From NCBI RefSeq assembly GCF_947568905.1, contig NC_079173.1, positions 29,636,001-29,700,000 on the forward strand: a stretch of DNA of 64,000 bases. The letters run 5' to 3'. The stretch comes from Ostrea edulis (lineage: Eukaryota). Of this stretch, positions 57,896 to 58,736 are shown in pieces. Made by a program: the position numbers and the translations under genes. The notes below the pieces were generated by a model that was not told the origin of the DNA, made no database searches, and saw nothing but the letters and a program-made list of their open reading frames with translations. Each line of letters opens with the position of its first letter. Position 1 is the stretch's first letter.

Positions 57896-57933
<38 letters not shown>

Positions 57934-58736
57934 GTGATTCTTGTTTATATTGTAGTGTCATTTAGTGATATTGTTTTTTATGTGATTCTTGTTTATATTG
58001 TAGTGTCATTTAGTGATATTGTTTTTTATGTGATTCTTGTTTATATGGTAGTGTCATTTAGTGATATTGTTTTTTTATGTGATTCTTGTTTATATTGTAG
58101 TGTCATTTAGTGATATTGTTTTTTATGTGATTCTTGTTTATATTGTAGTGTCATTTAGTGATATTGTTTTTTATGTGATTCTTGTTTATATGGTAGTGTC
58201 ATTTAGTGATATTGTTTTTTATGTGATTCTTGTTTATATCGTAGTGTCATTTAGTGATATTGTTTTTTATGTGATTCTTGTTTATATCGTAGTGTCATTT
58301 AGGGGAACACATGGCCATGCACTCTAACAGTCGACAGTACCTCTGTGATGTTTGTGGAGCTTCATTCAAAACCAAATCATGTCAACTGAAGCATGTGAAG
58401 AACATTCACCAAAATCCCAGGTCATTTCCGTGCAGTATGTGTGAAAAGCGTTTCAACACCAACTATGCCTTGAAGAGACACGAGAGAACGCACGAGAATG
58501 ATTTAAAAATGATGCCAACATCAACAAACGTATTGGTGACCCAGAACTTCTTGACAGACGTTTCAGCACAAGGCATAAATCAGGCAGAACTGGTACAAGC
58601 TACAGACATCATCATAACACCGTCTATTGAAGAGACGTATGAGCAGAGTAATGATGTAAAACTTCAACAAGTTCTCGGGGAAAATGCCTCGGCCATTATG
58701 TTTCTCTCCAGCTCACTCCCCAATTCATGGAATTAA
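50748..58736 (+). CDS. C2H2 zinc-finger protein, 9 fingers, long acidic/low-complexity N-terminus (about 918 aa)
   Basis: Exons 50748-51752, 52567-52962, 54506-54595, 54684-54813, 55212-55903, 58293-58736 with consistent phases (0,0,0,1,0). Nine CxxC...HxxxH units, the 7th split by the last intron. First in-frame ATG is 50748 (the ORF track start at 50730 is GTG). Confidence 0.9.
52567..52962 (+). CDS. ZNF coding exon 2 (contains KSTQT)
   Basis: ttgtag/.../gtattt; in frame with ORF 52582. Confidence 0.88.
53148..53385. repeat. Minisatellite, 29-bp unit, about 8 copies
   Basis: TCAGATAGC(A/C)AG(T/G)AAATTCTTAGATCCGC. Confidence 0.92.
53486..54428 (+). mobile_element. HINE-like element with 4-5 central repeats
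   Basis: TGTCTCCCC start, GGGGAGACAT near the 3' end, repeated GGAGGATCCAA units. Confidence 0.72.
54506..54595 (+). CDS. ZNF coding exon 3
   Basis: tttcag/.../gtattc; 90 nt. Confidence 0.8.
54684..54813 (+). CDS. ZNF coding exon 4
   Basis: tttcag/.../gtacag; phase 0-1. Confidence 0.82.
54885..55110. mobile_element. MITE with ACTGTAGATTCC...GGAATCTGCAGT termini; relative at about 17816-18043
   Basis: Terminal inverted repeats and shared TTATTTTACGCGAGTACTTA. Confidence 0.6.
55212..55903 (+). CDS. ZNF coding exon 5 (fingers 1-6 and first half of 7)
   Basis: ttacag/.../gtaaga. Confidence 0.95.
55936..57358. repeat. Minisatellite, 33-37-bp variant units, about 40 copies
   Basis: TCTATATCTTACGGAATCTTACATAGACGGGTTCTGTAAA with interspersed variants. 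Confidence 0.95.
57359..57930 (+). mobile_element. 5'-truncated HINE with 166-bp central repeats (Cg170-like, from recall)
   Basis: Period 166/172 bp (57395, 57561, 57733); 3' end GGTGAGCGATGTGGCCCATGGGCCTCTTGTT; related fragment about 7985-8170. Confidence 0.72.
57931..58302 (+). repeat. 48-bp tandem repeat, each unit a copy of the ZNF last-exon splice acceptor (8 copies)
   Basis: GTAG/TGTCATTTAG at 57956, 58004, 58052, 58101, 58149, 58197, 58245, 58293. Confidence 0.93.
58293..58736 (+). CDS. ZNF last coding exon (CHLGEHMAMH, fingers 8-9)
   Basis: atcgtag/TGTCATTTAGGGGAACAC completes finger 7 in frame; TAA at 58734-58736. Confidence 0.92.
   Translation, partial: CHLGEHMAMHSNSRQYLCDVCGASFKTKSCQLKHVKNIHQNPRSFPCSMCEKRFNTNYALKRHERTHENDLKMMPTSTNVLVTQNFLTDVSAQGINQAELVQATDIIITPSIEETYEQSNDVKLQQVLGENASAIMFLSSSLPNSWN

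Follow-up and report, generated by a model that had tools for sequence, protein, structure and literature searches.

An eight-copy array of splice-acceptor units precedes the last coding exon of an oyster C2H2 zinc-finger gene

The host gene and its last intron

The window, that is the whole stretch of 64,000 nucleotides that was analysed, derives from record OX387713.1 of the Ostrea edulis assembly GCA_947568905.1 and contains a gene for a C2H2 zinc-finger protein of 918 amino acids with nine fingers, distributed over six coding exons in the window. The locus fetched via the RefSeq protein corresponds to window positions 49248-60236, to which it is base-for-base identical, and a contig look-up with the same protein returned the window's own assembly as its sole match. 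The product is represented by the RefSeq entries XP_048754482.2 and XP_056008404.1, named "GDNF-inducible zinc finger protein 1-like", while the orthologue in Saccostrea is named "myoneurin-like"; both names were assigned automatically, and Pfam did not find a BTB domain in the translations of coding exons 1 and 2. Membership of the C2H2 class is evident from the tandem C-x2-C-x12-H-x3-4-H motifs, from which the nine fingers can be read directly, as well as from Pfam matches to zf-C2H2 in exon 5 (E=1.1e-15) and to zf-H2C2_2 in the last exon (E=4.1e-13).

Coding exon 5 (55212..55903, forward strand) codes for fingers 1-6 plus the first half of finger 7 (...FVCQVCNKAFRSK), is a 100% match to residues 540-771 of the RefSeq protein and ends in phase 0 at the donor AAG|gtaaga (55903/55904). 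The last coding exon (58293..58736, forward strand) provides the second half of finger 7, fingers 8 and 9 and a conserved C-terminal region (...AIMFLSSSLPNSWN), with the stop codon at 58734-58736. Its assignment is based on Pfam, on the RefSeq protein and on spliced contigs from two runs, X1 and X2, which are collinear with the window up to 58992.

The last intron (55904..58292, forward strand), which is skipped in these spliced contigs, spans 2389 nt and consists mostly of repeats. A 43-bp minisatellite of 34 copies (55953..57350, forward strand; 1.4 kb), detected with Tandem Repeats Finder, begins 50 nt past the donor, excludes the donor itself and is unrelated to the array that lies further downstream. 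It is followed by a very high-copy interspersed or satellite-like element with monomers of ~166 bp (57351..57930, no strand assigned), recognized by its 166-bp period and by its contig depth, which reaches 1e4-1e7 in four of four runs, DNA and RNA-like alike. The element comprises 2.6-3.4 copies and ends sharply at 57930/57931, and elsewhere it shows loose ends whose flanks are unrelated. At 7984-8162 there is a weaker copy, which is 73% identical. Tandem arrays occupy 34% of the gene span; over the whole window there are 25 of them, amounting to 13.8% of its length.

Structure of the 48-bp acceptor array

Between the high-copy element and the last coding exon, and extending into the latter, lies a minisatellite with a period of 48 bp (57929..58302, forward strand), for which Tandem Repeats Finder reports 7.8 copies with 98% matches, one extra T as the sole indel and an additional higher-order period of 145 bp. 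Each unit is composed of 38 nt of the 3' end of the intron, including a branch-like A at -19, a pyrimidine tract and the AG, followed by the first 10 bases of the exon. Indeed, a 33-mer comprising the polypyrimidine tract, the AG and the 10 exon bases occurs eight times with at most one mismatch and nowhere else in the window, with 0 occurrences expected in shuffles. The first exon-like bases of the eight acceptors are located at 57956, 58004, 58052, 58101, 58149, 58197, 58245 and 58293. An earlier note on this DNA had described eight 48-bp copies of a splice acceptor in front of the terminal zinc-finger exon, and both the repeat finder and the 33-mer count confirm this description.

The units differ from one another at a single site, the base at -5 (T,T,G,T,T,G,C,C from unit 1 to unit 8), and the extra T is located after unit 3. 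Unit 1 is truncated at the 5' end, at the point where it meets the end of the high-copy element. Between -48 and +10, units 7 and 8 do not differ. The seven decoy acceptors occupy positions 57956..58292 (forward strand), a stretch of 24% GC and 57% T that would become exon if a decoy were used.

In addition, every unit harbours a second AG (TTTAG) 10 nt downstream of the first, giving 16 AGs in total. As in NAGNAG tandem acceptors, neighbouring AGs of the array would compete for one intron, the second AG of each unit included; however, the AGs lie 10 and 38 nt apart inside a unit and 48 nt apart from one unit to the next, rather than the 3 nt that would give an in-frame difference of one codon. 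Each copy is furthermore equipped with a branch-like site and a pyrimidine tract of its own, and the outcomes break the frame, so that the array does not belong to the NAGNAG class. The most downstream of these AGs is found at 58301-58302 (TTTAG|GGG), 10 nt within the last exon and followed by a G, and its use would shift the reading frame. It is absent from Saccostrea and from a second oyster orthologue (both CACCTGGC), and the spliced contigs of the relative described below use the AG upstream of it.

Acceptor choice and predicted products

The end of exon 5 (...AGATCTAAG) is joined to TGTCATTTAG, after which the next base is G at the true acceptor and T at a decoy. Splicing to acceptor 8 (58293) yields CHLGEHMAMH..., which completes the C-x2-C-x12-H-x3-H motif of finger 7 and adds fingers 8 and 9. 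Acceptors 1, 2 and 4-7 are predicted to yield CHLVILFFM followed by a stop, and acceptor 3, owing to the extra T, is predicted to open a 91-aa frame that ends at 58327. Translation from the donor at 55903 therefore bears out what the earlier note had proposed for these products, namely that only the eighth acceptor completes finger 7 and gives nine fingers, that six decoys share one short ending and that unit 3 leads into a hydrophobic frame. It was likewise right that a stop reached through a decoy, given its place in the last coding exon, would be expected in principle to evade junction-dependent nonsense-mediated decay (NMD). The proposal that the unit-3 tail acts as a membrane tether, by contrast, rests on a compositional artefact: the tail owes its hydrophobicity (mean hydropathy 2.0) solely to being translated from a single frame of a repeat that is 57% T.

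The O. edulis RefSeq model reads ...AFRSK|CHLGEHMAMH..., which corresponds to the junction to 58293. The same junction is seen in two spliced contigs of 1685 nt (run X1, record 1) and 2923 nt (run X2, record 16), both of which match 55212-55901 and 58291-58992 at adjacent record positions and which, given the 2-nt AG ambiguity, define a GT..AG splice from 55903 to 58293. Both runs are RNA-like and stem from a related organism (organism A) that is ~3.4% diverged, with 24/690 and 21/702 letters of the contigs differing from the window, and whose genome may lack the array. Within these two runs, the contig depth over the array interior (58006-58259) is 0 and 0.04, and a further run, X12, covers only 55232-55643 inside exon 5. 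The orthologue of Saccostrea echinata has the same junction as O. edulis. Thus, the copy that is continuous with the exon is the site used in the mRNA according to the contigs of the relative, the O. edulis RefSeq model and the Saccostrea orthologue, and, on the basis of the RefSeq model and the sister-species contigs, we take the eighth site to be the established junction.

None of the 12 members of the 90% cluster of the RefSeq protein is a truncated isoform, and no decoy-type product was found in the RefSeq cluster or in the sister-species contigs, the latter being of a kind that drops rare isoforms and could miss low or moderate decoy use. Decoy use in O. edulis would probably amount at most to low-level leakage, arising from the nearest decoys. 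The earlier note had offered, as an alternative to a functional array, that the cell skips near-identical decoys; this alternative is the likelier one, and skipping of this kind has been documented in the 'mirages' of amphioxus and in human F7 (PMC3087553, PMC3902484, PMC1557585).

The frame that follows the eighth acceptor is also supported by comparison with organism A. The coding differences listed number 36, of which 33 are synonymous and 3 non-synonymous, and within the last exon all 15 of 15 differences are synonymous. This indicates that the exon is read in this frame and under strong constraint, and we regard the sequence comparison as evidence of strong purifying selection on the last exon.

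Origin of the array and alternative readings

The position of the last intron is conserved in the S. echinata orthologue as well as in four genomic open reading frames. A single acceptor without any repeat (...gtttcag|TGTCACCTGG) is present in an oyster contig whose last exon is 83% identical (Logan ERR13868524, 961-1665), and Saccostrea likewise has one acceptor and no repeat (...tatttcag|TGTCACCTGG), within an orthologous intron of 1916 nt that is devoid of any tandem repeat. Since both relatives have one acceptor, the array is derived and young. The accession series of ERR13868524 also contains runs with O. edulis-identical contigs, and because these share the series with the 83%-identical orthologue, the series evidently mixes oyster species. 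A word search with the 88-aa open frame of the array, directed at alleles of other copy number, returned no match, and exact look-ups of the array open reading frames and of the 141-aa last-exon open reading frame returned no record.

We consider it likely, with a probability of roughly 0.75, that the array is a 'mirage' minisatellite of recent, lineage-specific origin, either neutral or mildly harmful, in which the eighth copy works and seven intronic decoys are passed over. The repeat is arranged head to tail with a unit of minisatellite size, and the unit spans a real intron-exon border, established from the RefSeq protein and the spliced contigs, together with its splice signal and exon bases. 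Slippage or unequal exchange would have generated tandem copies of the 48-bp segment from -38 to +10 of the last 3' splice site, and a block of three units would have been copied again later, which would account for the higher-order period of 145 bp. The 3'-most copy would have remained continuous with the exon and served as the working acceptor, while the seven upstream copies became intronic decoys. We suggest that the choice of splice site depends on the adjoining exon body and that the decoys are ignored for this reason: only the eighth copy precedes exon-like, purine-richer sequence (43-48% GC and 50-53% purine), whereas each decoy precedes T-rich, intron-like repeat (24% GC, 57% T) that itself forms another pyrimidine tract. 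The array would then be a by-product of a repeat-prone genome, minisatellites taking up a third of this gene; one of the gene's 10 coding junctions lies inside an array, a share that does not exceed what its repeat density would lead one to expect. A point against this explanation is the identity of units 7 and 8 from -48 to +10, as a result of which no local signal accounts for the choice between them and a splice-site scoring model would rate both equally.

Two further candidates were considered and not adopted. Masking of the decoys by RNA structure was set aside: the array folds at -83.2 kcal/mol, compared with -66.7 +/- 4.2 kcal/mol for shuffles (z -3.9), but with a centroid of -15.8 the ensemble is diffuse, and unit 8 has no feature that sets it apart from unit 7. 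Recursive splicing, or a 9-nt micro-exon, was dropped, as the sole GT that follows the acceptor (TTA|GTGATA) would make a weak donor and leave an intron of ~39 nt.

The 'mirage' minisatellite is a kind already known, to which the oyster array adds a bivalve case. The amphioxus mirages, found in Adh3, the globins BflGb6 and BflGb9, troponin C and PGBD5, are tandem repeats that span exon-intron borders, in which the copy joined to the exon is authentic, the copy number varies between haplotypes and regular splicing is reported to be undisturbed (PMC3087553, PMC3902484). The closest counterpart is BflGb6, where an intron's 3' end together with the 5' part of the following exon is repeated and splicing is normal (PMC3087553); the oyster unit similarly multiplies an acceptor and the start of an exon, with the exon-joined copy authentic, although it measures 48 bp rather than 150-160 bp and occurs in a bivalve mollusc, that is, in another phylum. 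In the oyster array, short-read contigs of three other individuals differ from the reference in the terminal unit, with T instead of C at 58288. A further difference from the amphioxus mirages is that the oyster array lies in front of a transcription factor's last coding exon, so that junction-dependent NMD would not remove a decoy stop.

Intron 7 of human F7 contains a 37-bp variable number tandem repeat (VNTR) with 5-9 identical donors, of which only the one adjoining the exon is used, and the pseudo-sites become functional once the true donor is disabled (PMC1557585). As in F7, the terminal unit of the oyster minisatellite holds the real junction; however, F7 multiplies 5' splice sites and the oyster array 3' splice sites, and the 5'-to-3' scanning from the exon proposed for F7 explains the use of the first donor but not directly that of the last acceptor. 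Arrays of acceptors have received much less attention than arrays of donors like the one in F7. Early experiments with duplicated acceptors gave conflicting outcomes, according to the summary in PMC1557585, beyond which we found little literature on the subject. The oyster locus offers a clean natural experiment on how a 3' splice site is chosen, with eight acceptors of which two are identical from -48 to +10, and could test whether the rule that the site next to the exon body wins extends to acceptors. The terminal-exon setting adds to this, since a mis-choice would leave a stable truncated protein. As a single case the array carries little weight, being one more border-spanning minisatellite in a repeat-rich genome.

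The earlier note had put forward a working array, in which a VNTR made of splice sites could tune the number of fingers. On this reading, decoys would be used to a meaningful extent, yielding an NMD-immune factor with six fingers (hydrophobic-tailed in the case of unit 3) at a dose set by the copy number. All eight sites are indeed identical over the span seen by local splice-site scoring, the terminal unit is polymorphic among individuals, and the location of the decoy stop within the last coding exon means that leaked products could accumulate. A precedent is provided by the border minisatellites of human IFI6 (6-16) and CBS, which, as summarized in PMC1557585, give alternative products through use of the pseudo-donors nearest the true donor. 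The oyster minisatellite resembles these in spanning an exon-intron border, but IFI6 and CBS are donor arrays that produce small in-frame insertions, whereas the oyster array consists of acceptors and the use of its decoys is hypothetical. We nevertheless consider such tuning unlikely. The RefSeq cluster of 12 members contains the full 918-aa product only, the contigs of the sister species lead to the eighth site without branching, conservation of the last exon and of the C-terminal motif is strong, and the array is absent in other oysters, which have one acceptor. Moreover, arrays are no commoner at the junctions of this gene than repeat density predicts, and the hydrophobic tail is what one frame of a T-rich repeat encodes. 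The proposal is therefore left without support. It is decidedly improbable, in our judgement, that decoys, likeliest those nearest the exon, are used measurably in O. edulis and give rise to a stable, NMD-immune six-finger form whose share rises with copy number; were this so, a heritable minisatellite would modulate the DNA-binding array of a conserved regulator.

We give very little credence to a mis-assembly of a shorter repeat as the source of the array or of its copy number. Assemblies are prone to expand or collapse tandem repeats, and the BflGb6 mirage of amphioxus was mis-assembled in the draft genome (PMC3087553). However, the unit variants of the oyster array are ordered (T,T,G plus the extra T / T,T,G / C,C) with the 145-bp higher-order period, and genomic contigs from three other runs, each from another individual, stop precisely where a second copy would introduce a branch. 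These contigs, which belong to a DNA series as judged by intron-exon read-through contigs in that series, start at window position 58273, exactly 30 nt ahead of the GGG by which exon and decoy can be told apart; a graph with k=31 is bound to branch at 58273 if at least one further copy (at least two in total) exists. All three have T instead of the reference C at 58288 (forward strand), the -5 base of the true acceptor. Together, the breakpoints and the T indicate that the repeat exists in other individuals and that its last unit is polymorphic. In a further DNA run, X7, a 700-nt contig over the last exon stops at 58289, at the edge of the array and beside the variable base, and contig depth is present over the array interior (58006-58259), a depth that was not used for copy number as contig depth is unreliable. 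The array is thus probably not an assembly artefact.

That the array belongs to the neighbouring high-copy element, as a transposon-borne satellite tail that resembles the exon start by chance, is scarcely credible: the array does begin exactly where this element ends (57930/57931), but other copies of the element continue into unrelated sequence (loose-end agreement ~0.4), which argues that the array is not part of it, the 48-bp unit is found nowhere else in the window, and the acceptor together with 10 of 10 exon bases is exactly repeated in every unit.

Two further tandem repeats of the window are worth recording. At 37172-37359, a 48-bp unit is repeated four times with 84% matches and includes a donor-like ...AAACGTG|GTATGT, which probably makes it a second border-spanning minisatellite, in another gene of the window. 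At 16676-17249, a 237-bp unit is present in 2.5 copies and contains a tRNA-like stretch (GCTCAGTTGGTAGAGCA...GGTTCGAATCC-like), and may represent an array of a tRNA-derived SINE.
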